A stretch of 25,366 nucleotides of DNA from positions 297,126 through 322,491 of the forward strand of contig RHPI01003261.1 in NCBI GenBank assembly GCA_009103225.1, written 5' to 3'. Made by a program: the position numbers and the translations under genes. This DNA is from Chlorokybus atmophyticus. Its lineage: Eukaryota; Plantae; Mesostigma and Chlorokybus algae. Shown here one piece after another: positions 2,627 through 25,366 of this stretch. Position 1 is the first letter of the stretch. Each line of letters begins with the position of its first letter. The notes under the pieces are model-generated. The model had not been told where the DNA came from, did no database searches, and worked only from the letters and a program-made list of their open reading frames with translations.

Positions 2627-5600
2627 ATGCAAGCCTGGATTCAATCCCATCAACTGGTCCTTCAATCCCACTTGCTGATGGGCGCGGCGGCAATGCGGCA
2701 TCAGTTTAACATGCATGTTGGCCTGTTGAATCCCGACATGTCCATTGGGGCAGTGGCGCATGATGTGCCCATGGCTCACGAGCTCCGTGACGAGTCTGCC
2801 ATCGAGGGTGGCGGGGAGAGTGCAGCCAATACCACCTTGTCAGCCCCCATGGCTTCCCCTGCTCCATGCAGCCCACGGGCCATTGAGGTAAGTCGCTGTC
2901 TTTTATGCTCGTGCCTTGGTAACAATGCGTCAGGCACTGCATAAGCTTATATTCGTCCTTTGCAACATTGTGAGCCATCTTATCCTGGATTCTGTATACA
3001 ACCCCCCTTGCTGCATGCACAAGTGGTCTCACCTGCATCTCCTGCTCCCCTCCCAGCCAGAGCGCAACCACCTTCCGCGGCACCAGTCCTTCATGCACTG
3101 CCATCTCCTCCACAAGCAGCACCGGTGATTGCGGGGCAACAATCCTTCTTGCTGCCATCGGCGAGACCACAGCACAATGCAACAACCGATGTGGCTTTTG
3201 CACCTATCTTACCCCACCCGCTGCAAGTTGAAGCCGGCAGTCTGCCCCAAACTCAGGTACTTTATCAGTCACTGTGACTCTTGCCGTCCACAGTTGGACA
3301 CACCATGTGAGTGCTGTGTGCGCATGCAGCAGGGGTCACCACCTGCCAGCGAGTCATTAGAGGAGCTGGCCGCAACCCGCATATGGCCATCAGTCATGCT
3401 AGGTGGCCAGCTCGCCTTATGGGACCACTTCAATGCGCCAACGGATGGTAATTGCTTCTACCATTGTGTATTTCGCGCCAGGCCATCAATAGCGCAAAGT
3501 GTCCTGGATGATCACAAGTGCCCCAGCTCGAGCAGATTTTGGGCCATGCTGGACACCATGGACGACGACGGCAGGGGGCACACTCTCCGCAAAATCACCG
3601 CCAAGGCTGTCGATGCAGGCGTGGCGAGCAGAATCCTAGACTTCTGCAGAGCCACTGGTGCCGCGGGAGAGATGGCGCAGTATTACGACAAACTGCCTGC
3701 GACCATGTTGGCTGATGTCAACTTCAACATTGACCTAGCCATGGCCAAGGTGCGACAGATCGTGCGGAGAAAAGATGTGTACGTCGAGCACCTGCAGATG
3801 ACCATGTTTGCCAACAAGCTGGGCTTGTTGATTGGCTGCGTGACCGTTCAGCGCGAGCATGGGGAGTGGGTGCCACGGCCCGGCAGCGCAGTTTGGGTTG
3901 GAAATAAAGAAGCCCCCAACTCAGTCCTGGTGGTGGGCAACACTGCTCCTAATGAGCCAGAAGCACACTTTTGGCTCCTCAAGCCTGCACGCACCGAACA
4001 GTGGTCGTGGCCTATGCATAAAGTGCCACTGGAGGTAACACACGTGATTGAAGAGTGGCGGAATGGCGTTGCCAATTCCCCGCTATCACCGGCTGTGACC
4101 CAGAGTGCTGCGCCAACGCCTCAGGCCTCGCCTTCGTGTGCTAGGCAAGAAGTAGCCGAGTGTTCTGCACATCCTGCCTCCCCTCAACCACAGCCACATG
4201 CTCGCAATCTTAATTCAGCTCCCTCCCTTCCTGCCGCGGAGACTCACTTGCCACCGCACTCTGACCATCCGGAGGCATCTCCATCAAGAAGCAGCTGTAG
4301 CTCGCCCTCTCCCTCAAAGCTTGCCACATTGATCCCAGCCTGTCTTGTTGATAAAGAGATTAATCGAGGTGTCCTGAAAGCTGCGCTGAAAGACCAAGGC
4401 TTCATGCTCGACCTTATGAAGCAACATGAGGTCATGGAGGAACGGGAGGCAACCAACAAGCGCAAGGCTGTGGAGCAAGAAGATAACGCCTTACCTCCTC
4501 TGAGTGACAGTGCCACGGAGAGCGCTTGCCAGGATGTGCAGGGTGACAAAAAAAAAAGATGAAGGTTGTTGGAACAAAAGACGCTGACAGGATCAAAAAA
4601 GGAAAGGTGAGGCATCGTTACAACAGTAGAAGAAGCACAGCGCCTTGAAGCCTCACTGGGGCTGACTGTGTGTCCTGAGTAGGCACAGGCGGGTTTACAG
4701 CGTCAGGTGGCTGCTCAGCATCGTCCAGAGAGACAGCCGGTGCGGCACGAGCTGCCTAAGCTCAAAGCACTGACGCGCAGACGCTTTGAGGGGCTGACTC
4801 GTAGTGCAAAGGAGTTGATCACCCTACAGTACGCCCAAAACGTGCTGCATCACCGCATGCGGTATGCCTCGAAGTGGGTGACGAAAGTTTGCAATAAGTG
4901 GGAGCAAACGCGGAGAGTGCGGTCTAAACAGACCTCTGGGGATTGGCCGTGGTTGGAACCCATACACGATATGGCCATCCGTAGTACGTTGTTGCCCCTC
5001 GCCGTCCTCGATATGATGGTGTTGTTGCTGCCGCAGCACCCCGGCAATGTGCAAGAGCTATCTGCGGAGCAGAACTTCGACCTGCTGCAGCAGATGTACC
5101 TGTCGATGTCGACTAATGCGGGTCGAGATGTGTGCCACTACCTGAGCAAACATACTGGGTGGCAAGTAAAACCATTTGAGCTGTACTTGGCATGCTTTGG
5201 CTGGCAATGGCTGTATGTCATACGGCACGTGGAAATGACAATGCGGGGGAGTACACGAGTGATGACAGCCATGTCGAGGGCCTGGATGAACGCATGCTGG
5301 ACGAGACCACCAAGACCAGCAGGTGGTGTATGGCGGCAGATGGGCAACAGGTGATCGAGCAGGNAGTGGAGCGTTATGCTGCGCCATTCAGATGGGAGTC
5401 GCTACGCCTGCAACGCGATAACAGAGTTTGGTGGCAGAGGCAGCTTGCACACCCGCGTGCACCATGTGCCCCTTTTTTCAATAGGAATTGGAGAATACTG
5501 ATCTTGTTTGAGGACTTCAGTTAAGCGAGCACCTCTGTTTAGCAAGTATTGAGTAGCTGCATCAAGATCTGATCCAAATTGAGCAAAAGCAGCAACTTCA

Positions 5601-6065
5601 CGATATTGAGCTAATTCTAATTTTAAAGATCCAGATACCTGTTTCATAGCTTTTAATTGAGCTGCAGAACCTACACAACTAACAGACAATCCAACGTTGA
5701 TAGCGGGTCGAATTCCACGATAAAAAAGTTTAGTTTCTAAGAATATCTGTCCATCGGTAATTGAGATAACGTTGGTTTGTATATAGGCGGAAACATCTCC
5801 AGCTTGAGTTTCAATGACAGGTAAAGCGGTTAAAGAACCAGCCCCTTTTTGTCGCATTGAAGAGCCCCCCCCCCCAGCGGATGGGGAGACGCCCTGTTGC
5901 AAGAAAGCGATGTGCCATGTCTGCATCATAGCACATCAGAAGACTGTGGCAAATAAATNGAAGAATTCACAAGCGTGTCCATTCTGCAAGCAACCTCACC
6001 CGTTTTGGTCGCCACGCCTGATGCAAGACGCCAACGTGTCGGCGTTGATTTGGCCCCCGCCTTGA
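2627..6065 (+). pseudogene. Multi-exon OTU-like cysteine protease/deubiquitinase + C-terminal RING finger, disrupted
   Basis: OTU Cys box DGNCFY (3444-3461), VEHLQMTMFANKLGLLIGCV middle block and His box EAHFW (His at 3966). Phase-0 introns 3257-3329 and 4607-4688, with a frameshift in the 10-A run 4548-4557 and another frame change near 5160-5220. RING-like CAPFC...[13 protein letters not shown]...ACPFCK is restored after removing the NUMT. The true start is uncertain. Confidence 0.7.
5468..5850 (-). other. atp1: NUMT: internal fragment of mitochondrial ATP synthase alpha subunit gene
   Basis: [106 protein letters not shown]. The [16 protein letters not shown] and [10 protein letters not shown] blocks are the mitochondrial type, not plastid. 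AT-rich, no introns, flanked by GCCCCTTTTT at 5468-5477 and 5841-5850. Confidence 0.95.
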
Positions 6066-6548: not shown

Positions 6549-8277
6549 ATGATGTCGGCGGCAGCAGTTGAATCCCCCTCACCTAGGAGACCATGCTTGG
6601 TGTGCCCACAATGCAATGCGTACGTATGTGCCAATGGCCGTAGGCAGCAAATGCGAGCACACTTGCCCGAATGCCAGCGAGTGCAGACAGTGTGCCACGG
6701 TTTTAGTGCTGCTTGCTGGCATCACACCACACACAATGTCGACGTGTTTGGCTGCCGCCTTGGCCAAGTGCTGTGCAAGGAACCCGAGTTTTTCCATTGC
6801 GTGCAGTGCGTGTGCGAATCGTGCTCGCGCTCATGCTTCGAGTGGCGAGGGGAACCCATGCGTTTCTTCACATGGACAACACCGGGACATGTGGTTAGTG
6901 GACAGGTGGTGGATGCTGTGGAGGTAATCCACAAGAGTGGACCGCGACGTATCACTGCATGTTATGTTGGGCGTATGCTTATTTCATGCATGTTGAAGCT
7001 GTTGTCGCATTCAGAGTAGTCTTGCACGGTGTGGGCGTGGGCAGTTCCATCCCCTGGCCGCTGTAGAGGAGGCAGACCATCGACCGTTGGATAGCGCACT
7101 GCATCGGCTGCGGAACGCAGTTAAGTTGGGATGCGAACAGCTGATCGGTGTGAGTGTCATGGTGCATTGGCCGCTGAATGGGGAATGGTATGCGGGCGTT
7201 GTGGAATCATTCAAGCAAGCGTCAGGTCAGCATCGCTTCGTAGCGTGCGAGATTGAGGACGCATCATATATGCATGGTGCAATGGAAAATGTCTTTGCAG
7301 GGCAGCACCATATAGTATTTGATGACGGTGATCGACCACAAACCATCAACTTCAAAGGGCACAACGTATTCGCGTACACATCAATTGACGGGGCACGCCA
7401 TGTTCTGCGCGCCGGAGGGGAGAACGTCAGTCGCAAAGTAAGCCCGGACGGCATCATTGTTAGTCCCTGGCCAGCACCACGGCCAGCCTTGACCACATAC
7501 ACGCCATTTGACAACAAGCTGGGACGCACACGCAGACCAAGGGCACTCGACCTATTCTGCGGCGGTGGCGGTGCCAGTGTCGGTCTATACCACGCAGGCT
7601 TTGACGTGACCGGGATGGACATAAGTCCCTCCTCTGAGTACCCGCTGCCCTTCATACATCGCGATGTATGCACCCTAAGTGCAGGAGAGCTCAGCGAGTA
7701 CGAGCTCATCTGAGCCAGTCCACCATGCCAGGCATATTCAGGTGCTATCCCGGCGCCTCAACGGGCGGCACATGGCACATCTTGGAAACACCAGAATATG
7801 ATACCGCTCGTCCGACGTCTGCTGCTTGCAGGCCAGGTCAAGTTTGTGATTGAGAATGTGCCAGGAGCAGCTTCCTCATTCAGACCCAATCTATCCCTTT
7901 GTGGCACGATGTTTGGCCTATCAACTTTCCGACACCGTCTGTTTGAGACACAGCCAGTGGTAGCTACCCCACCAGCACGCTGCTCGCACGCGGGCAAGGC
8001 AGTTGGACTGCTATCGCCGCACCTGTCCGCTAGCGCGAAGAAGACAATCGTGACATCAAACGCGCCACATCAGATGTACCCGGTCTATGGCCTTCCAAGC
8101 ACCAGGGGCGGCATTGCTGTGTGGCAAACAGTGTTGGGAGTGCCATGGATGCCCTCGGCCGTTTCCATAGCGAATGCAGTTCTTCCCGCAATGGCGGAGT
8201 GCATAGGGCGTCTCATGCTTGAAACAATGGATATGCGCTGTGACTACCCTCTTGTGTCATGGAACTATCAGGCTTGA
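6549..8277 (+). pseudogene. Zinc finger + Tudor (Agenet/PDS5-MSH6-like) + C5 cytosine DNA methyltransferase fusion with one premature TGA
   Basis: MTase motifs: I RALDLFCGGGG (7540-), IV I*ASPPCQ (TGA 7711-7713, Cys 7726), VI ENV (7852), VIII RHRLFE, X ANAVLP. ORFs 7087-7713 and 7798-8277 share one frame. Removing the 75-nt intron 7226-7300 gives the Tudor motif VHWPLNGEWYAGVVESFKQASGQHHIVFDDGD. The 5' exon 6549-6923 (Cys-rich) joins in phase via intron 6924-7014, which is less certain. Confidence 0.88.
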
Positions 8278-8648: not shown

Positions 8649-9075
8649 TGTTGAGAGTATTCCTACATACGATCAGCATCGACCCTCCACACAGGAGTAG
8701 AAGGTCGTAAGGACGAGCACTAGGTCCGGACTTAGCAAGATGGCATCGTCGGACCAGACTCCGGACTCCAGACTGGAGCCTTACTAACTGCTTCGTATCT
8801 CCGCGTATACTTACTCATATCAGGCGTGTGAGAGCTTGTTGAAAAGCTCTGGTTGTAAGGAAGACAACACAGCTTAGAGCGCGTCAAACGGCTGAGTATA
8901 GCTTACGCAGTGCTTGCAAACGTAGACGTGTGTGTAACTGGCTGGTATAAGAACCAGCGGACAACTTGTAATAGATGAATGTGATGTGACTTGTGTATGC
9001 TCTGGTGGCGGTAGCTCTGTCCCTGTGTGTATCCATGCTTGCCTCCGCTACATGTGCATGCTAGTCCTTCAACAC
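8649..9075. repeat. Copy B of the direct repeat shared with 1-425
   Basis: Direct alignment; offset 8648, then 8650 after a 2-bp insertion near 9027. Confidence 0.97.
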
Positions 9076-12048
9076 ACTTTGTGTCGCTTGTCACATCCAG
9101 CTTCGTGTACCAGCGGACAAACACGACCTCCTTCCACACGCGCTCGCCGCTACCACCCCACACAACCACGCGCAGAAAAAGGAGTGCCTGAGCCCACCAC
9201 GTCACGTTCACACCGTCCTCATCACCTTCCAACTCAAGTGTAGAGAACCAAGGCCGCCCATGGAACATCCCAGTTTTGCGCGCCATGCTGACTCCTGATG
9301 TCATGTACACCGCTGCGCCTCCGTTCACCACGCGAACAGCACGCCACCCGTCGGCCAACTCCAGTTGTTCCCTCCTCAACCAGCTGTCCAGGGCGGTAGG
9401 CAGCTTGTCGACGAATGGATTCTTTAAGGCGACTTGGCGGCTACGCGCAGATCCGCTCCAGTACGGGCTGGACTCCCTCCTTGTCAGCACATCCATCCAT
9501 AGCAACTTGTCCGTCTTCTCCATGACATTACAGCACTGCTGCCGCGCCTGCGCCATGACCGAGCGCATCTCGGGATCCACGACCATGCCATCCTCTCTCA
9601 CATATTCCGCACAGCTCCATGCCTTCAGGATACGCGCCTGGTAGTCCCGGTTGTTGCCACCACGCGCCCACCGTTTGATATTTTGGGCGTGCGTCTGCTC
9701 CATGCGGTTGGCGCTGAACCAATCTGGGTGTCCACTGCTGACAATTGCCGGCCCAAATTGAGTCAGCTGATGCATCTTCTCGATCTTCCAACCTGACTTC
9801 TGTGCAGAATCTGACGACAATAGCGGATGCAACACTGCAGCTTTGAAGGCAGCAAGCTCGTTGTCGGCTGTGGTCAGGGTCTCTCTTGTGTGTTCATGCG
9901 CCTTGAGCAACTTCTTGTTCCACTGGGCAAGCGATGCGACAGCAATGGTGAAGAGATCGTTGCCCTCACTGTCGAGCAGCAAACCGTCTGCGACTGGCAG
10001 CAGCTGCAACACCGCCACTTTCTCCACCACCTGAAAGGAGTGGTTGGACAGGAAGAAATCTACTGTGCTTGTGGGTGCCTTGCAATGCGAAACCCGCAGA
10101 GTCGCCTTGCATGCATTCAGCCTGTGCACATCTGCTTGTGAGCACGTGTCGTTGGCTTTTGTGTTCAACACAAAAGCAACACCAAAGATGTGCCTGGCCT
10201 GCAAAATCTGTTTCGTGGATGGACGCATTTGTTCCTTCGCGGCGTCGTACACAGCAGCAAACAGGTGGTCAATGATGCCTCCCAGCACATGCATTGCGTC
10301 AGGGGCAAGACGAGAGTAGCAGTCAGCTCCCGGCACCCGCGACTGTTGCCAACCCCACAGTGCATTCTGTTACCAAACCACATGGCCTGGTTTCACGGAA
10401 AGCCATTCATCCTCATGAATGCCGATAATTTGACCATTACCTCCTCGACATGCATGGAGTGCTGCTCTTTGAAAGCCTTGGCTGTCTGGCGTGCATTCCA
10501 GACACCGCTATGCAGGTCCGCTCCTTCTGACGTATTGCTGGTGTGTAGAAGGCCTCGGTTCTCAATTCCCGGTCCTCATCCATCTCCAATAGATCTAATT
10601 TGGTGACAAGACAAACATCGCAAGGATGTCGTGTTTAGTTGCCCGACACAGTGCGTGCGAGTGTGGCAGTCTCCTACAACACGACAAACTTAGATGTTTT
10701 ATTGACAACATCCTCCATGCACTATTTGCTGGCAGGCTGCATCCGGTTACAACCATGCATGCCCACTACCTGCAAGTCGCTGATGAAGTTGGCAAGCGCG
10801 GGAAACACACGACGCTCGATGCCATTCGGGTCGATGAGCAGCAATCCTTCCCAACTCGCCCGCTTCACATCCCCTAACACTACATTCAAAGCGTTATGAA
10901 AAATCTCACGTTTTTAAATGGAGAACAATTCCTTGCCCTGCGCCCAGGTGGGATGCTCGGCCATCGCGTGAACCACCGGCAGAAGCGCCATCATAACAAC
11001 CCCCATGTTGCTAGCATACATGTCCCCTGTAGTTGGCAAGTGATGCCATCAGAGGGTAGCCAGAGCGCTTGCCCGCGCTGTCCAGCGTGGTCTTGTCACT
11101 GTACAGAATGGCAGGCGCCAAGTAGGACGCTTCCCCCACCTCTCTCCTCAAATCCACCTCCACATCCTTCCATCAATCGCCCGTGGAAGGATGGCCAAAG
11201 CTGTGCTCGTCATCAGTGTACTGGAGATGGAAGCCATTGGCGGCATGTGGATTGCCATACAACCGCGCGAGCCATACCTGCTCCGACCAAGAGCATTACT
11301 TACTATGCTGGCCTCAGAATAGATACTGCATCGATACTGCATTAGGTACTGCATTTCACAGACCTTGGCCGGCATATATGTGACGCAGATGTCCTGATCC
11401 TCAGGGTCTCCAGGCTTGCGCAGGTCAGCCGTCACGTAGTTCTGATACGGCAGCACACTCGCATGTGCATATGTGACATGGCTCTGATGGTTGAAGCACA
11501 TGCACCGCACACCGTGCACACACCTCAGACTGAGAGAAAGCAATCGCGGTCCGGAGGTAGCTGGTTACATGCACACCGGTCTCCCACTGGAGCTCTTCCG
11601 TCCGGCAGTGTGCATTTCGGATGCACTTGATGATCCGCCCCATGTCGGAGGCCGACAGGCCTTGGCTGTTGTTGCACTGCACGAATGCCACTGCAAGAGC
11701 ATGCTCCGAGCCATACCACCTAGATTCCGACGCGTGCGAAGGGACGCCTCCACTTCCATGTTGGCGTGCCACAGGTTTCTTATGCACACGCACACATCGA
11801 AAGCCCTCGTTCACTTCCTCCTCCTCCTGTTGCTGCTGTGCGTGTGTCTCCTGGAGGAATCCTTCAGCATCAAGCATGTTTGCATCCTGGATCGAACTCC
11901 CCGGTTCAACATGACCCGCATCGTACTGTAATGGACGCTGGCCGACATACAGCTTGATCTGCTTGCACACCCTGCTGCTAATAATGTGCATGTAGACCGA
12001 GCTGCGTGTGGCGAAGCGCATGTGGCAATACGGACAAAGGACTCCCAT
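8874..12048 (-). mobile_element. Plavaka-family (CACTA-related) transposase pseudogene with introns
   Basis: N-terminal CPYC..H..C finger; phase-0 introns 11523-11442 and 11363-11278. Diagnostic blocks: WLARLYGNP, TGD*WKDVE (TGA 11175-11173), PAILYSDKT..SGYPLMASLAN, REIFHNAL, RRVFPALANFISD, PDAMHVLGG, KMHQLTQFGPAIVSSGHPDWFSANRMEQTH..KRWARGGNNRDY. Several stops and frameshifts between 11200 and 10600. The ancestral stop is inferred at 8876-8874 from copy A. Confidence 0.87.
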
Positions 12049-14081: not shown

Positions 14082-16142
14082 AAAAGTGCAACCTAACTGC
14101 CGCCAACTGACCGAGGCTATGTCTCGGTCAGTTGAAGCAAAAGGTGCGCGCCGTAAACTGCAGCTAACTGATCAAGACTATTTCGCGGTCAGTTGGAGGA
14201 AAAGGTGTGCGACTTCACTGCGGCCAACTCACCGAGGCTATTTTGCGGCTACTTGAAGCAAAAGGTGCGCGACATAATTGCGGCCAACTACGACCAAGGC
14301 TATTTCTGGGTCATTTGAAGCAAAACGTGCGCGATTTAACAGTTGCCAATTGATCGAGGCTAGGTTTCGGTCAGTTGGAGCAAAAGGTGCGCGACTTAAC
14401 TGCGGCCAATTGGCGACCGCTTTTACACCTCTCTATTCACCACACCGGCTGCATTTAGATACTATGTACAACACAGTTGTGAGACAAGTGTGGCAAGCTG
14501 ACTGTATTGAACAGCTTCATGCATACTCACACTTTTTGAGATTTGTTTTTCCGTCGCCGAGCAGCTGAGCTACCCTCTAGCTTGTCGCTGATGTGAGTAA
14601 CCGGAGAAGGAGTAGCAACAGGTGCTGGAGAAAGAGGAACAGCAACAACATATGAAGCAACATAAATAGGAGGAAGATGAGTTGCGCCGCCATTACCATC
14701 ATTCATTGCTAACCACACCGTTGGCGCCACCACCGCCGCAACTTAACTGCTAAATATATACTTACCTCAAAAGTGCAACCTAACTGCCGCCAACTGACCG
14801 AGGCTACGTCTCGGTCAGTTGAAGCAAAAGGTGCGCGCCGTAAACTGCAGCTAACTGATCAAGACTATTTCGCGGTCAGTTGGAGGAAAAGGTGTGCGAC
14901 TTCACTGCGGCCAACTCACCGAGGCTATTTTGCGGCTACTTGAAGCAAAAGGTGCGCGACATAATTGCGGCCAACTACGACCAAGGCTATTTCTGGGTCA
15001 TTTGAAGCAAAACGTGCGCGATTTAACAGTTGCCAATTGATCGAGGCTAGGTTTCGGTCAGTTGGAGCAAAAGGTGCGCGACTTAACTGCGGCCAATTGG
15101 CGACCGCTTTTACACCTCTCTATTCACCACACCGGCTGCATTTAGATACTATGTACAACACAGTTGTGAGACAAGTGTGGCAAGCTGACTGTATTGAACA
15201 GCTTCATGCATACTCACACTTTTTGAGATTTGTTTTTCCGTCGCCGAGCAGCTGAGCTACCCTCTAGCTTGTCGCTGATGTGAGTAACCGGAGAAGGAGT
15301 AGCAACAGGTGCTGGAGAAAGAGGAACAGCAACAACATATGAAGCAACATAAATAGGAGGAAGATGAGTTGCGCCGCCATTACCATCATTCATTGCTAAC
15401 CACACCGTTGGCGCCACCACCGCCGCAACTTAACTGCTAAATATATACTTACCTCAAAAGTGCAACCTAACTGCCGCCAACTGACCGAGGCTACGTCTCG
15501 GTCAGTTGAAGCAAAAGGTGCGCGCCGTAAACTGCAGCTAACTGATCAAGACTATTTCGCGGTCAGTTGGAGGAAAAGGTGTGCGACTTCACTGCGGCCA
15601 ACTCACCGAGGCTATTTTGCGGCTACTTGAAGCAAAAGGTGCGCGACATAATTGCGGCCAACTACGACCAAGGCTATTTCTGGGTCATTTGAAGCAAAAC
15701 GTGCGCGATTTAACAGTTGCCAATTGATCGAGGCTAGGTTTCGGTCAGTTGGAGCAAAAGGTGCGCGACTTAACTGCGGCCAATTGGCGACCGCTTTTAC
15801 ACCTCTCTATTCACCACACCGGCTGCATTTAGATACTATGTACAACACAGTTGTGAGACAAGTGTGGCAAGCTGACTGTATTGAACAGCTTCATGCATAC
15901 TCACACTTTTTGAGATTTGTTTTTCCGTCGCCGAGCAGCTGAGCTACCCTCTAGCTTGTCGCTGATGTGAGTAACCGGAGAAGGAGTAGCAACAGGTGCT
16001 GGAGAAAGAGGAACAGCAACAACATATGAAGCAACATAAATAGGAGGAAGATGAGTTGCGCCGCCATTACCATCATTCATTGCTAACCACACCGTTGGCG
16101 CCACCACCGCCGCAACTTAACTGCTAAATATATACTTACCTC
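14082..16142. repeat. Three near-identical tandem copies of a 687-bp unit containing ~60-bp hairpin subrepeats
   Basis: Units 14082-14768, 14769-15455 and 15456-16142; the only difference I saw is T/C at about 14119. The first ~340 bp of each unit is ~5.5 copies of a ~60-bp repeat (GCAAAAGGTGCGCGAC..CAACTGACCGAGGCTAT..CGGTCAGTTG). Confidence 0.97.
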
Positions 16143-19100
16143 AAGGCAGGAGCATTACAAGCCAGGTCAGCTTCATCCGAATCTAATTCTTATCCATAAC
16201 ACGTATGTCTAACAGCAAATAACGTATTTGAGTCTAAATTACGAATCCAGCAACATTAGACAACACTGGTTACTCTTGCATAACGCTAATGATTAAAATG
16301 TGCCAAAGGTAGCAGATTGAGTTATCGTCTGAGTCCAATATGGTATGAAATGAGATGTCTCCTAGTCAGACTAGGTAACCTATAACCTTAACTAGTATTG
16401 CGAGACTTTTTACCAGCATGTGCTAGGCACGACTAGACATGCTACATCAATAACAGATCATGACGCCAGACATAAAGTCTACTTTTATGTAATCTTGGTA
16501 GACTCTGCTAGGGTATCTACCAGACCCTTGTCCACCATAATATGTCCTCACTGGATGCCAGACAGAGGTTCCATTTTGCGAAGTGCATTTTGATTGGCTG
16601 AGCTAGGTGTTGCATTGTGACAAAATGCTTCTGCACAACCCAGGACATGCTTACTAGCAACTTTTCAGCTTGCTACCACAGTCAGAATGAGTGCTGTCAA
16701 TGGCTTTGGCTACCATAGCACGGTGACCACACAGTGGCATTGAAGGCTGATTTTGCACATGTGGTCTACTGCAGCGCAACAACATGTGTTTGGCTAAGCT
16801 GTCTACTTACAGCGCCTAAAAAACAACAAGACTGCATGCCTGTTCAGATTGCCATCTTGAATAAAGTTGATGACATGCATACCTTAAGCTTGCAACTGGG
16901 TGCCAGTGCCCCAAGTCAACTGGCAGCAGCTGCTTACACTGATTGGACCACGGACCCACCAGACCATCCTTCACTTCCCAAAATTTAGCCGTTCGTAGCT
17001 GGTCAGAAGTGCTAAAATTACTTTAACTGTAAGAAATAAACTGGATGAATCGGTAATTCGGTGCTCACCGCCAATGCTACCAACGTCGATGATTGCCCCA
17101 TGCATCTTGATTGCGCACTTGAAAGCACGCATTGCATACGCAGAGGCAACACACACCCATGCAGTGACATGTGAGTTCGTATACTATGTGAAGCATGGAC
17201 TACAACAACTTGCACCGTCACAATGCTGTGGTCGTTATTGTGAGCAAATGCAACCGATGAATTGCCGTTAAGCTTGCGCGATCACTGCCGTACACTACTC
17301 TGTGTTGTGTACAGCAGCTCACAATGCACTGTCTCATGTTGCACGAAGACGGATGCAGCCGAAACTGATTGAGGCACCTACACCACTCACCCACGACCAG
17401 CCACACACAAATGCAGAATGGCAATTGACACATGTAAATCGGACGATGACTAAATGTGCAAGGACAACCAATAACTGCTACGGCGTGCAGCACACAGAGA
17501 CGCTTAATTACAGTTCTGCTTATGCCCAACGGGGGCATAACAACAACGTTTAAGTTATCAGTCAATTGGTAATCCATTGTTATCCAGTTACGCCGTCGGC
17601 GTGACTTCATATATCGTCAAATATCGAGCCGCAAATTCCTCAAACAACAAGACATTACCAACAAGCAGCGGCGGTCCAAGGCATCATGTTTGCAATCAAT
17701 GTAAAGCTTAATGCGATGTATTAAGTGCGTCATAAAACGTCATCAACGCCAAGAAGAACAAAATAATTATGTGCATAAGCCTGTTAGCCTGCAATTGATC
17801 AACATACTGTAATCATCGAAACGCTTTCAAACTACAATACCTGTTTTCACCCTTAAAGGCAAACTTGATGAGAGATTATGTTTCGCGTTTACATGTATGT
17901 ATAAATACGCTGCACGATGCGCATACGTGGCATAAATTATGCATATTACAACACAAAAAGGAAATCATATAATAAACATATGAAACAAGATGAGCACAAT
18001 TAACATTGATAACATTGATTTCAATGCATTCTATAATCATTTTGTTGTATTTGTGTTCAATACATGCTGTTGCATAGTAAATGAATTAATGTGAGATCCT
18101 TCAAGACCTATTTACATTGTTATCATATGTGCATGTGCATATGGCAACACATAGATGACTCGCTGTAATATAGCTATGATTTATATATTTAAAGCGCATA
18201 CGCATATATACTATTATGTGTATTGCTACTTGAATATTGATTATATAAACAAGATAAACAAATTTATCGTTTATGAAACAATATTGCTTTTATTGATGCA
18301 ATCATAAATGCATTTGCATGATCTGAATGCAATATTCATTGATAAGCGCTTGTTTATGTTGTTATTATTATTATGTTGCAAGGCTTGCAATTACGTATGC
18401 TTTATTATAACATAAGCTTTCATGGTCCCCCGCCCTGCTTGCAGCTTTATCTTTACAAAAACGGCTTGGATTGGGGGTGGAGGTGGGGTAATGGAGTGCG
18501 TTATGTATACAATTATGCTGCTGCTTTGGGTGCTTGCATTGTGCAATGTTCAAACGCTTTGAAGTATGCAACATGTGATAATATAACACGTTTCACACTT
18601 GTGATGCTTACTATGCAGACAGTCGTGAGTGTGCATTGTTGTTGTAGTCATCATGCCCAATTGTATAGGCCCCCCCCCCCCTGCCCCCTTATAATAATTG
18701 CAGCCCCCCACCCCTGATTACTAAGAGGGCTTGAGTCGAGGGTGATGACGGGGTGGGTGGGTGTACTATACATAATAATTATATATGCCGCTACTTCGAG
18801 AGCATGCATTGTGCATTTTTCAGCTTGCATTATCATTTATCATTACATTGCATTACGCACGTAAACTGAGCATACAATTTGTTGCAAACTTTGCAAGAAA
18901 ACATATGCATCATCGTATTGCAAAATTTGTAGAAATCTATAACGCACAACTACAAAGCTTGTATAGATCGTATAATCATTCCAATATAGTATGCATGCTT
19001 GGTTAACACGTCGCACACTTTGTATGATATAACTATGCAAACATGTATGAGTAAGCATTATTTATGGTATGGTTGTATTCGCCATATTGTTATAACTGCA

Positions 19101-20289: not shown

Positions 20290-23200
20290 TTAGCGCAAGC
20301 AAACACAATAATGTATATGTATTATGCGGCAACTACTATAGTCCTCCTCATTTACATCTTCTACGCGCGGATGAACAAATGAGTGAATAATGCTCTGTGT
20401 AACACTAGACACACCGAAAACGTGAAGATGCGTCAACTTGTTTTCCAACTTCCTAAGCGCCATCTGCTCCATTTGATTGAAGTCTTTAGAAGCTTCGATG
20501 ATAAAAGCGTCAAGTGCATCCACATGTTGCATCGCTTCTCTCAATGTCGGCGCATGAGGGGGCTGATTGTCAGGGTCATCTGTGCATGCTAGTCTTAGCG
20601 ACATGTACAACCGCTATCATGCAATTGCATATAGTGCAGGCACCACACCGTCACTTACCTTCCTCATCTTCTTCCTCATCGGACGATGGCCCGAGACCAA
20701 CAGATGCCAGTATTTCAGCATCCGTTGCTGTTGCCTCCGTGGGCAATGTCTCATCCGTGTCCACAAAGTCCTCGGCGCTGATTGTGTCTGATGCTGGAAG
20801 CTTCATCCGCGCCATGAGTTGCTGCAAATCATCTAACTCTGAGTTGTAGTCCTTCGCGCAGTAGCAATGCAAGTTACCAATGTTGGCACAAGCATTGTTC
20901 TAGCAATAACCACCAACTCAGCATACATACCTTGGCGTCAATGACGCGATGAACGGATGGGGCGTTGAGGTTGTCCTTGATTGCATCAGCACACCAATCG
21001 GCAGGAATAACCTTGCTCTTGCGCCAGCAATTGCGTATGGTAGAAGGAGTGAGCTCCATCCAAGCTTCACGGCTCCACATGACGGCGTCGCGCACATCCA
21101 CTTTGGTTTTGCTGAGGTCGGAAGTGGGGTTGGCGTCAAACTCTGCAAGCATGTGCGCAACCAACTTCTTCTTGTACCTGCGTAGCAATGCGTAAGACTT
21201 GAACATATCCTCACAAAGTAACGTGCTTTGCTCACATGATGTCAAACCTTACCTCATCTTGAATGCAGCAATTATGCCCGCATCCAAGGGTTGAATGACT
21301 GATGTTGTGTTTGGAGGCAAGAACACAACGGTCAGGTGAGACATAATGAGAGACTTGAAGCTGCCTTTTGTCCCCGACTTGGCTTGCGCAGATGTGCGTT
21401 GCTGCGTTGTCCATGAGCACCAGCACTTGTCGATTGGCACGGCGCATATCCTCATTGAACGCACATAACCACCGTGTAAACACCTGCATGCCATTGCTGA
21501 AAATCAGCACAGTTCAGACATGTGCGCGCGCATACGCGCACGCGCGTGCATACACGCACACGCGCGCATGCACGCAGATCAGATGCATGACCATAATTGA
21601 ATGCACATAACCACCACGCAAACACCTGCATGCCATTGAACTGGAACTCAGCACATCGCACGCGCCCGCGCACGCATGCGCGCGCGTGCGTGCGCGTGCG
21701 CGTGCGCGTGCACGCAGATCAGATTAGATAGATGACCATAATTGAATGCATACAACCACCTGCATGCCATTGAACTGGAATTCAGCACATCACACGTGCA
21801 CGCGCACGCGCACGCATGCGGGCGCGTGCACGCAGATCAGATACATGACCATAATTGAATGCACACAACCACCATGCAAACACCTGCATGCCTGATTGAA
21901 CTGGAATTCAGCACATCACACACATACGCGCACGCGTGCAGATTAGATGCATGTCCTTGAAGTGAATGCACACAACCACCATGTAAGTACCTGCTTGTTA
22001 TGATGATCAGCACAGCTCACACATACATACATGCGCACGTATGTGTAAGCTGATTTGCGTGCATGCGTACGTGCGCGCGCGTGCGTGCGTGCGTGCGTGC
22101 GCGTGCAGATTAGCACACCATGTACACAAGCACAGCATGCAGTGTCATGAAGATCAGCACAGCTCACACATACATACGCGCATGTATGTGTGAGCTGATC
22201 TGCGTGCGCGTGGGCGTGCGCATGCATGCGTGCGTGCGCGTGCGTGCAGACCAGCACACCATGTACGCACGCATGCAATCAATCAGTGAGTGCACGCCAA
22301 TCAGTTGCATGACAACGCACCTGGTGTGTCATCCACGCCGTTGAGTTGTACTCATAATTCACTCCAACTCGGTGAGGCTGCCAAGTTTACCAAAGCATCT
22401 TGGCTGCTTGGACTTGCCAATGAAAAGCAAAGGACGCTTCTCCGTGCCGCTTGCATTTGTGCACAAGACAACAGTGCATCGATCCTTGTGCTTTTTCATT
22501 CTGTAACAAACAACACAATTAAGCTATGCTCATTGGCTTGGCTGTGCAGCTGCAGTGCACTGAGCTTTCTTACCCACGAGCGTCCAAGGCTGCAACTGCA
22601 AGCGTGCGACTTGGGCGTGCGCGGTAGAACAAACCCGATTCGTCCATGTTGAAAGTATCGTCGTGGTCATACTCTTTCAGGAGGAGAGGCAGCTCCGTCA
22701 TTGCCAAGCGCACACCATCCATGTCAGCATCTCCTGCCTCTCCATGCAATGCATAAGCCTTGATGCCGTGACGCTTTTTGAAACCATCAAGCGAGCCCGA
22801 AGAATATGAGAAGCTTGATGCAATGTCTATACCAGCGGCATCCGTAAAGGCTCGTGCTTTGGCAATTAAGACCTCGTCAGTTAGTGTGGCCTTGCGCAAC
22901 CGAGCTTGCCCAAACCATGCATACAATGCTGCTTCTAATTCAAGATAATGTGTTTGCCTAACCTTCTTGAACACTACACCACGCTCACCAGCCTGAGCTA
23001 TAACCTCGACCATCTTATCCTTTGAACGCAAAATTCTAGAGAGTACTGGCTGGCTGAGTGTCAGCCGTAACTTGTCGTTGATCATGAGTAGCAGGTCGCT
23101 CTGCTTTTTGCCAGGGTGTGCGTCAACCAATGCAATAACTGCTTGCTTCTTATTGACAGTGTATGCTCGACGCTTGATGCCCTTGCTGCACGCATACACT

Positions 23201-23806: not shown

Positions 23807-25366
23807 CGTGACAATTTGGTCTAAACCGTTACTGGCTTGAACATTTTCGGTTGCTGTCAGGGCATGGCCTCAGTCGTTGGCGCCATTATTGCGGCCAATG
23901 AATGACCGGACCTGTATCGGTCTCGATGTCCACGAAGAATCCACAATGGTCCAACCTTGCCGCGGATTGCGCCCCAATTTTGCGCCTCGGTGTTGTACAG
24001 GACGTATATATAGTACACGTATATAAGTACAGCACGTCATATGTCACCTTTTAGCGCTGCACAGCATCAAGCGGGTCGTCCTAAAACGCGTCCGTCGTTT
24101 TAACTATTAAATCTTGGCACTAAATGTCGAGTTGATGCTGAGCTTGCAGTTCTTCCAGGGAAGGTGTGGCGTTAGTGGCGTTAATGGCGGCAAGTTCTTA
24201 TGTCGCGGGGTCAGGGGCGGCGTGGGTGGCATTGGCTTCTCTCTCTACTGCCGCCTCCAACTTAGCAGGGTGGGTCTGAGTGGCGGCGACCATATGGAGG
24301 GAGAACGTGCTATGGTGCTGAGCGGCTGCGACGGCATGCTGCTGGTTTGGTACTGGCGCTCAGCTAAGGGCATCAACATCTAGGTGCGTCTTGCTAGGCT
24401 TGTGTTTGATGGTGAACTAAGCCTGTAGCGCCATTACCCAACATGCATGCCTTTTCAATAGATCTTTTGCTTTCATGAAGCTTAGTAGCGGTTGATGATC
24501 TGCCTCCACTACCACCTCTGCTCCCCATAGATAGCAATGAAATCTCTTGAATGCTCATAATACTGCAAGCAGTTCCTTGTTTATGGACGAGTACCTCTGC
24601 TCTGTTGGTGTCAGTGCTCTGTTGAGGTAGTGCAATGGCTGCTGATGACCCTCATGTTCTTTGCATAGGACAGCTCCCAACCTCATGTCTGAAGCATTGA
24701 TGCGCAACACAACGGGTTTGGTAAAGTCTAAGTGTGTAAGCACAGGTGGGTCCATCAATGCCTGTTTCAGAGCTATAAATGCTGCTTCTTCAGCCGTTGC
24801 CCAAGTGTACTTGACATGATATGCATTGTTGCGAAGGTTGTGGCGGAGGGGTGCTGTTTTTATTGCTATATCAGGTATAAAACGCATGTAAAAGCCGCAC
24901 ATTGCCGGGAAGCGCATCAGAGCATTCAAACATTTTCGGCTTACTGTTGGATTGCAGTTGTATTCTCTTGATCTGCACTGACTGCGTTGGCTGACACAAT
25001 GTGACTCAGAAACTATAGAGTTGTCATCCTAACAAAGAATTGCTCTATCCGTGCTTTCAAGTTGTACTTCTTCAGTCTATCCACCACCTCCCTTACGTGC
25101 TGCATGTGCGTCTTCCAATTGGGTGAGTGGACGATGATGTCATCTATGTATGCCATTGCGTCAAAACGGCCCATGAGCACGTCATTCATGAACCACTAAA
25201 CCATTGTTGGTGCATTGCACGAGACGAAAGGCATCACAAGAAACTCATAGTGTCCTCTGTTCGTCCGGAATGCTGTTTTCTCAATGTCGTCCGGATGCAC
25301 TCTGATCTGCCTGAGGTAAGATAGTATTTTTGTGAAGTAGCGCGCTCCTTCTAGCTGGAGGGGGGG
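23807..25366 (-). mobile_element. Degenerate Ty3/gypsy LTR retrotransposon pol (RT, RNase H, probable integrase zinc-finger remnant); runs off the window
   Basis: [41 protein letters not shown] at 25150-25139, GFYMRFIP, NAS..LGAVL, E.RYS..KELLAV, EADHQPL, DVDALS. Many stops and frameshifts. The 23807-24360 part is assigned weakly. Confidence 0.9.

Follow-up and report, generated by a model that had tools for sequence, protein, structure and literature searches.

A probable three-exon chimera of a Tudor domain and a compact methyltransferase of a giant-virus-contig clade in the alga Chlorokybus atmophyticus

The chimeric gene and its exons

The stretch of DNA analysed here, in the following called the window, comprises 25,366 nucleotides of Chlorokybus atmophyticus (assembly GCA_009103225.1, contig RHPI01003261.1, positions 297,126 to 322,491 of the forward strand). 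Positions 6549-8277 of its forward strand carry a chimeric gene to which a three-exon model, read from the sequence, can be fitted; the model comprises 521 codons including the terminal TGA and joins a Tudor domain to a compact domain that resembles C5-methyltransferases. We consider it fairly probable that this gene is a host chimera in which a Tudor domain was combined with a compact methyltransferase of a giant-virus clade in a design that would tether the enzyme to chromatin, and that the copy in the window is most likely non-functional. The parts of the gene, all on the forward strand, are as follows:

6549..6923, forward strand: putative exon 1, starting with ATG and predicted to encode a Cys-rich N-terminus of 125 aa with 14 Cys; open frame, fitting splice phase
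6924..7014, forward strand: predicted intron 1, 91 nt, GT..AG (GAG/GTAATC ... TTCAG/A), leading from frame 0 exactly into frame 1
7015..7225, forward strand: exon 2, a linker and the first half of the Tudor domain
7226..7300, forward strand: predicted intron 2, 75 nt, GT..AG, in frame and stop-free, in phase 1 in a Gly codon within the Tudor domain
7301..8277, forward strand: exon 3, intronless; completes the Tudor domain and continues through a linker of ~45 aa and the entire methyltransferase domain to the terminal TGA (8275-8277)
7126..7392, forward strand: Tudor domain similar to those of RDM15/PDS5C and 53BP1, split by intron 2; PDB 7DE9 at an expectation value (E) of 1e-8
7528..8274, forward strand: compact C5-methyltransferase-like domain, ~249 codons, colinear with whole phage enzymes of ~226 aa
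7555-7572, forward strand: methyltransferase motif I, FCGGGG
7711..7713, forward strand: in-frame TGA, one codon before motif IV (ASPPCQ)
7717-7731, forward strand: motif IV, SPPCQ, with the predicted catalytic Cys at 7726-7728
7852-7860, forward strand: motif VI, ENV
7930-7947, forward strand: motif VIII, RHRLFE
8173-8193, forward strand: NAVLPAM, a C-terminal motif that reads A(I/V)PPAY in the relatives; two substitutions at nearly invariant columns

The Tudor domain and the methyltransferase are physically fused, and this does not depend on the gene model, because a single uninterrupted open reading frame (ORF, 7087-7710) contains both Tudor halves together with methyltransferase motif I in one frame. 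Both introns interrupt the N-terminal part that holds the reader, and none occurs in the exon of the methyltransferase. Such an arrangement resembles a foreign exon without introns that was joined to host-type exons, and it disagrees with a preliminary description of this DNA, made from the sequence alone, according to which the methyltransferase itself had gained introns. The spliced-gene model of that description is borne out in its coordinates and content, with two GT..AG introns of fitting phases, and the TGA at 7711-7713 is indeed the only internal stop in the approximately 520 codons, with no frameshift besides it. Intron 2 appears as coding-like as the exons (0.42 vs 0.41 bits per codon), a comparison that draws on 24 codons only. 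Its first bases are similar to the start of exon 3 (CAGGTCAGCA, CAGGGCAGCA); an origin of this intron by tandem duplication of the exon 3 start was considered and rejected, as the alignment score of 5 is not significant when compared with shuffled sequences (-11.6 +/- 7.2, maximum 15).

As exon 2 contains no ATG before the Tudor domain, the start codon has to be supplied by an exon further upstream. Exon 1 is a putative candidate for this role, and its coding status is suggested by the open frame, the fitting splice pair, and a codon-usage score that weakly favors its frame (+9.7 vs -23.8 and -0.9 in the other frames, trained on exons 2-3). A second reading frame is likewise open throughout exon 1. 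BLASTP detected no homologs of exon 1 in 271 related proteins, neither Pfam nor the PDB gave a match, and the fold predicted by AlphaFold is uninformative (predicted local distance difference test score, pLDDT, 39). A second Tudor-like barrel over the junction of exons 1 and 2 had been considered as well and was dropped, as it has no Pfam match.

The Tudor domain

When the Tudor region is compared in its unspliced form with the Tudor domain of Arabidopsis RDM15 (PDB 7DE9), the match reaches 22.9 bits (E 6.5e-4). Removal of the 75 nt of intron 2 lets the match to 7DE9_A, the best among solved structures, climb to 38.1 bits (E 1e-8), with an alignment that is unbroken over the junction (VVESFKQASGQHHIVFDDGD vs VVESYDAAKKKHLVIYDDGD in RDM15). 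This gain on splicing supports both the Tudor domain and intron 2, in agreement with the intron-split Tudor fold that had been recognized in the preliminary description. The spliced query also matches Tudor chains of 53BP1 in the PDB, from E 2.5e-4 and weaker, whereas the second Tudor half alone gives no PDB match. The Pfam Tudor models remain under their gathering cut-offs (PTM_DIR17_Tudor 20.5 vs 27.2 bits; 53-BP1_Tudor 17.0 vs 22).

RDM15 reads monomethylated lysine 4 of histone H3 (H3K4me1) by means of W616, Y623 and Y641 together with D643 and D645 (PMC8184781), and the residues at these positions in the window are W, Y, F, D and D. Glu647, which belongs to the H3R2 pocket of RDM15, is replaced by Pro, and Gln654 lies outside the aligned stretch. 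Tudor domains of this type read lysine in a low methylation state on histone H3. By these residues, the methyl-lysine pocket is plausibly intact, and a mark of the H3K4me1 type would be the presumable target of this Tudor domain.

The methyltransferase domain

The in-frame TGA splits the methyltransferase into two pieces. The C-terminal piece obtains E 1e-33 in a HMMER search against 1.84 billion proteins, and it matches 320 phage records, mostly from Mycobacterium, Streptomyces, Gordonia and Arthrobacter phages, with E 1e-20 to 1e-23 at 35-38% identity; due to these values, the match cannot be attributed to chance. The N-terminal piece matches 245 phage records. The phage genes that are hit are the same for the two pieces, and both also match the profile phrog_363 (E 4.5e-11 and 8e-5). 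BLASTP against gp84 of Mycobacterium phage Zeeculate (226 aa) covers residues 2-47 and 65-220 (E 8e-12 and 7e-32). The spacer between motif VIII and the YG motif has a length of ~47 aa in the window, as in the phage forms, and contains no insert.

In case of Pfam, Zeeculate gp84 passes the C5-methyltransferase model PF00145 over motifs I-VI (24.4 bits vs a cut-off of 22), as do two further relatives over the same motifs (P0005, 37.5 bits; P0007, 42.1 bits). Neither piece from the window matches PF00145, and the split at the stop costs score in this comparison. Pfam and NCBIfam searches with the two pieces gave generic noise of S-adenosylmethionine (SAM) methyltransferases only, and the C-terminal piece alone has no match in the PDB. 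A profile of the family matches solved C5-methyltransferases (M.HaeIII, a Dcm-like enzyme, DNMT2, M.HhaI and DNMT1) weakly and over motifs I-VI only, with E 1e-6 to 1e-2 for DNMT1, DNMT2, M.HhaI and M.HaeIII. This agrees with the earlier assignment to a compact phage or bacterial type rather than to DNMT1 or DNMT2, and judged by motifs and profiles, the domain is a divergent branch of predicted compact C5-methyltransferases outside the solved eukaryotic DNMT families. The family to which it belongs is widespread in actinophages and bacteria.

The conservation of the domain can be judged from 88 relatives, in which FCGGGG, SPPCQ, IENV and RHRLFE are found at columns that are at least 95% conserved. 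The window keeps 52 of the 60 columns that are conserved to at least 80%, and in motifs I, IV, VI and VIII no position has been lost. In the C-terminal motif, A(I/V)PPAY has become AVLPAM, which is a change from P to L at a column conserved to 99% and from Y to M at a column conserved to 93%. The earlier view that all catalytic motifs are intact thus holds for motifs I, IV, VI and VIII, but is slightly too generous with respect to the C-terminal motif.

Relatives on giant-virus-like contigs

With HMMER, 1661 relatives at E <= 1e-3 were retrieved in an exhaustive search of 1.84 billion representative proteins. The best of them are 280-490 aa long and 43-46% identical, and among the best 150 of the 1661 matches none exceeds 503 aa. 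By its closest relatives and architecture, the domain is not assigned to any of the known eukaryotic families DNMT1, DNMT2, DNMT3, DNMT4/RID, DNMT5, DNMT6, CMT or DRM. Over the first 100 residues of the C-terminal piece, up to 46-53% identity is reached with relatives that are encoded on giant-virus-like contigs. These contigs are gene-dense and intronless and carry giant-virus hallmarks: topoisomerase II and ribonucleotide reductase on L002, an RNA polymerase subunit Rpb1 with intein and PolB on L003, mRNA capping triphosphatase, kinases and topoisomerase IIA on L007 and L008, and a D5 primase-helicase on L009. Two further contigs with relatives have no hallmark genes and are otherwise consistent. 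The window shares with this clade the N-linker 'RRRP..LDLFCG' before motif I and the C-terminal tail 'DYPP..Y', but not an insert of 90-150 aa that the clade has downstream of RHRLFE and ahead of the YG motif. One subgroup has an insert that matches the Pfam domain MBD (P0002, 27.5 bits, and P0010, 33.7 bits, vs a cut-off of 21; P0006 and P0001 are just below).

A maximum-likelihood tree of 89 sequences was calculated from 226 columns, with X at the stop; it is unrooted, and its bootstrap is not fully converged (correlation 0.958). In this tree, the window, 13 MBD-insert and 22 long-insert sequences (36 rows) form a clade with an ultrafast bootstrap (UFBoot) of 100 and a Shimodaira-Hasegawa-like approximate likelihood ratio test (SH-aLRT) value of 97. 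Four actinophage sequences are found outside of this clade, in another part of the tree. The preliminary description had considered the enzyme as actinophage-like, which remains valid in terms of its colinearity with the 226-aa phage enzymes, but its nearest relatives are those of the giant-virus-contig clade. The window lies outside both the MBD-insert group (98/92) and the long-insert group (100/95) and thereby represents a third, insert-less lineage. Its terminal branch of 1.44 is long in comparison to the median of 0.64, which weakens the confidence in the placement.

In the MBD-insert relatives (P0001, P0002, P0006, P0010, P0161-P0163, P0165, P0167, P0168, P0170, P0171), the MBD is embedded in the enzyme itself, after motif VIII and ahead of the YG motif; loci are L002:10001-10843, L005:2028-3050, L009:2874-3716 and L007:9239-10534. 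Such viral relatives suggest that giant viruses couple the reading and the writing of 5-methylcytosine (5mC), and no description of this reader-within-writer design was found in the literature that was searched. An aquaporin (MIP) gene adjoins the MBD-type methyltransferase gene or lies near it in L002 and L009. At L007:9239-10534 and L008:1064-2359, the MBD-type methyltransferase was called as two ORFs, P0018 (260 aa) followed by a 144-aa ORF with the MBD, so that this gene may contain an intron or a frameshift or be interrupted by a sequencing break. Five metagenomic proteins of ~450 aa (P0003, P0004, P0164, P0166, P0169) contain two complete compact methyltransferase copies in tandem.

Searches for further Tudor fusions

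No similarity to the Tudor domain or exon 1 was found in the 271 related proteins (BLASTP), nor did tblastn detect any at 171 related loci, taken from IMG/VR and JGI metagenomes, with 4 kb of surrounding sequence. A profile search of 5.8 billion proteins revealed no second Tudor fusion of this methyltransferase family, and a single-sequence search with the Tudor domain and the N-terminal methyltransferase piece gave no fusion either, with a best coverage of 28%. These fusion searches are limited by length windows, word matching and the small number of eukaryotic genomes, and a fusion may exist in unsampled genomes. A single-sequence scan of IMG/VR with the methyltransferase piece returned nothing; the 171 related loci were obtained with a closer alignment as query. 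Ten ORFs of the window have no exact match in a collection of 15 billion proteins.

Genomic surroundings

The window has the look of eukaryotic nuclear DNA, with a GC content of ~0.5, transposon remnants and tandem repeats, and it is not gene-dense. It contains no tRNA genes and no Rfam matches. Besides the chimeric gene, the following features were recognized:

1-425 and 8649-9075: direct repeat, 97.9% identical overall, the first 372 bp differing at two positions only; 8.65 kb separate its copies, which bracket the gene
3129-4562, forward strand: ORF of 477 codons, no Pfam match, no relatives in IMG/VR
5405-5929, reverse strand: fragment of mitochondrial F1 ATP synthase alpha, intronless, adjoining the gene upstream; corresponds to residues 370-497 of the Polytomella chain, E 2.4e-63
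8903-10336, reverse strand: ORF of 477 codons, no Pfam match, no relatives in IMG/VR; its 3' end lies inside the direct repeat
14082-16144: three tandem copies of a 687-bp unit, 99.9% identical, with 60/122-bp sub-repeats that contain an internal inverted repeat (GGCCAACTGACCGAGG...CGGTCAGTTG)
20877-23199, reverse strand: remnants of pogo/Tc5-type DNA transposons, with the C-terminal part of DDE_1 at 20877-21245 and HTH_Tnp_Tc5 at 22573-23199
21454-22273: GC/GT-rich repeats of ~800 bp, 140-bp tandem and palindromic, between the pogo/Tc5 parts
24558-24929, reverse strand: remnant of a long terminal repeat (LTR) retroelement, RT_RNaseH_2 fragment, E 1e-23

The ATP synthase alpha fragment scores 216 bits with the Polytomella chain and 213 with mammalian chains. 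Its arginine finger SVSRVG has become SVSCVG, and the fragment looks like a dead copy that was processed or captured. It is flanked by single N bases at 5364 and 5959. The left copy of the direct repeat extends past the window edge. In the ORF at 3129-4562, a GNCFYHC motif is present that we take to be reminiscent of OTU proteases, without support from Pfam, and the ORF at 8903-10336 found no homologs in the search of 5.8 billion proteins. Viral hallmark domains were absent from 16 other ORFs of the window that were scanned against Pfam, and tblastx of the window against six virus-like contigs detected the methyltransferase only. As the neighboring ORFs also have no relatives, the locus is not recognizable as an endogenous giant virus (giant endogenous viral element, GEVE).

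Proposed history, state of the copy, and alternative explanations

In the history that we favor, an intronless methyltransferase gene of a giant virus would have entered the host genome and would then have been joined to host exons that already contained introns and encoded the reader domain. That the viral part was intronless and the reader exons came from the host is suggested by the fact that introns occur only in the reader part and not in the catalytic exon, and a giant virus is likely the immediate source of the methyltransferase, as its nearest relatives form a clade on giant-virus-like contigs. In an intact protein, the Tudor cage would bind a methyl-lysine mark and thereby hold the enzyme on marked chromatin, and the cysteine of PPC and the glutamate of ENV would transfer the methyl group from SAM to C5 of cytosine.

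The copy in the window is most likely no longer functional. This assessment is based on the premature TGA, the losses in the C-terminal motif, the long branch, the transposon-rich setting and the adjacent dead gene fragment. The preliminary description had envisaged a chromatin-targeted methyltransferase, and the stop, the motif decay, the long branch and the transposon debris make a dead copy the more likely case. Several points nevertheless weigh against the reading as a dead virus-host chimera. The 520 codons contain a single stop and no frameshift, and the four core catalytic motifs are intact; with a single lesion and intact core motifs, the death of the gene, if it is dead, must have been recent. 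The TGA at 7711 may just as well reflect an error of the assembly or a polymorphism of the strain. Introns 1 and 2 as well as exon 1 are predicted parts of a gene model, and it is the motifs that point to DNA as the probable substrate and to C5 of cytosine as the probable target. Furthermore, with an unrooted tree and the window as a third, insert-less lineage, the transfer may have occurred from virus to host or from host to virus.

What alternatives exist for a dead chimera of host reader exons and a viral enzyme? The gene could be alive and encode a working chromatin-guided methyltransferase, if the TGA at 7711 were a sequencing or assembly error or a polymorphism, or if it were decoded, be it by read-through or by a variant nuclear code. 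The single lesion, the intact motifs I, IV, VI and VIII and the intact Tudor cage would agree with this, and among 11 aligned relatives the column of the stop is occupied by Trp in seven, as a code with TGA as Trp predicts, and by His in the other four. While such a reading of TGA as Trp is conceivable, it is disfavored, because the gene itself terminates on TGA (8275-8277) exactly where the 'DYPP..Y' tails of the relatives end, and the window offers no second conserved gene from which the genetic code could be read. The loss of two nearly invariant C-terminal residues, the long branch, and the decayed repeats and dead gene fragment in the surroundings are further arguments against a living gene, which we thus regard as unlikely. 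We would only tentatively go one step further and propose that the copy has been inactivated recently, or appears inactive by a TGA artefact, and is a paralog or allele of a working, lineage-specific enzyme that combines a giant-virus methyltransferase with a host Tudor domain of the H3K4me1 type; such an enzyme would write 5mC on chromatin with a particular histone mark, and it would represent an independent, virus-seeded origin of histone-guided DNA methylation from a family without known eukaryotic role.

Alternatively, the whole gene including its Tudor part could be viral, i.e. a relic of an endogenized giant virus whose other genes decayed or lie outside the window. The nearest methyltransferases are on giant-virus-like contigs, the same clade has already fused a reader domain, the MBD, to the enzyme, giant viruses carry chromatin genes, and endogenized copies can keep a multi-exon structure (PMC11244446). 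A viral Tudor part nevertheless appears improbable, as neither the 271 proteins nor the 4-kb surroundings of the 171 loci contain a homolog of the Tudor domain or exon 1, the tblastx match to the six contigs is restricted to the methyltransferase, the 16 ORFs carry no hallmark domain, the two large neighboring ORFs have no relatives in IMG/VR, and the region contains host-type transposons and is not gene-dense. The direct repeat 1-425 / 8649-9075 raises the question whether a large mobile element carries the gene as cargo, with which it would methylate or mark its own DNA, or whether the gene is part of a recently duplicated segment. The repeat brackets the gene together with orphan ORFs and the captured-looking ATP synthase fragment, and transposon-borne methyltransferases are known from brown, green and red algae, with a ParB-methyltransferase cargo having been proposed to act in this way (PMC12477816). 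However, Pfam detected no transposase, integrase or reverse transcriptase between the repeats, the left repeat extends off the window and thereby hides the ends and any target-site duplication, and the ORF at 8903-10336 has no homologs; a cargo gene is therefore very improbable in our view.

If the gene is the dead virus-host chimera that we favor, the locus is a snapshot of a domestication, whose interest is lowered by the broken copy and by a function that is predicted only. It then represents a seldom-seen intermediate, in which an intronless catalytic exon of the giant-virus type is joined to spliced reader exons of the host type. Should intact copies exist in the lineage, they would permit a direct test of whether a viral methyltransferase was domesticated into a histone-guided writer, and of the mark that it followed. 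Should this be the only copy, it would be the record of a failed or abandoned domestication.

Comparison with known systems

The DNA methylation systems of eukaryotes are believed to have arisen by repeated assembly from foreign methyltransferases that later gained chromatin-reading domains. The locus is not new in principle: foreign 'orphan' DNMTs, many of them from giant viruses, have already been described in eukaryotes (PMC12344493, PMC11244446), and a foreign methyltransferase fused to a reader is known as well (PMC8885841). In Amoebidium, 10 of 18 DNMTs are located inside endogenized giant viruses (PMC11244446). The gene in the window resembles these orphan DNMTs in being a cytosine-methyltransferase-like gene of a eukaryotic genome that falls outside of DNMT1/2/3/4/5/6 and has its closest relatives in giant viruses. 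Orphan DNMTs are generally reported without companion domains, and GEVE genes are mostly intronless (PMC12344493, PMC11244446), whereas the gene in the window has a Tudor domain and two predicted introns and lies outside of a recognizable viral region.

With respect to the catalytic part, the actinophage 'DNA methyltransferases' of ~220 aa (Zeeculate gp84, phrog_363) are colinear from end to end, similarly compact, without a large target-recognition domain, and have the same order of motifs (FCGxGG, ASPPCQ, IENV, RHRxFE, YG..G..W, IPPAY). They differ in being only 35-38% identical, in their position outside of the window's clade and in having no N-terminal reader. The methyltransferases of the giant-virus contigs (P0001, P0002, P0010, P0163, P0005 and others) are closer, as they share the supported clade, the N-linker and the 'DYPP' tail, but they carry an internal insert, which is either the MBD or a long insert, where the gene in the window has an N-terminal Tudor domain instead.

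With respect to the fusion, N4CMT of bdelloid rotifers combines a bacterial N4-methylcytosine (4mC) enzyme with a chromodomain (PMC8885841), and other DNMTs are fused to a PWWP domain (DNMT3, ChloroDNMT), a chromodomain (CMT) or, in some DNMT5b, a Tudor domain (PMC9998398). All of them join a histone-mark reader of the Royal superfamily to a DNA methyltransferase that is sometimes foreign, as does the gene in the window. The catalytic family, the Tudor subtype and the fusion event are different, and the copy in the window is interrupted, with a function that is predicted only. Tudor domains of the RDM15/MSH6 type have been fused to other enzymes more than once. Like the H3K4me1-reading Tudor domains of plant RDM15/PDS5C and MSH6, the one in the window has an aromatic cage of W, Y and Y/F and the two Asp that coordinate monomethyl-lysine; it deviates from them by the exchange of Glu647 for Pro, and it is attached to a methyltransferase and not to a cohesin regulator or a mismatch-repair protein.

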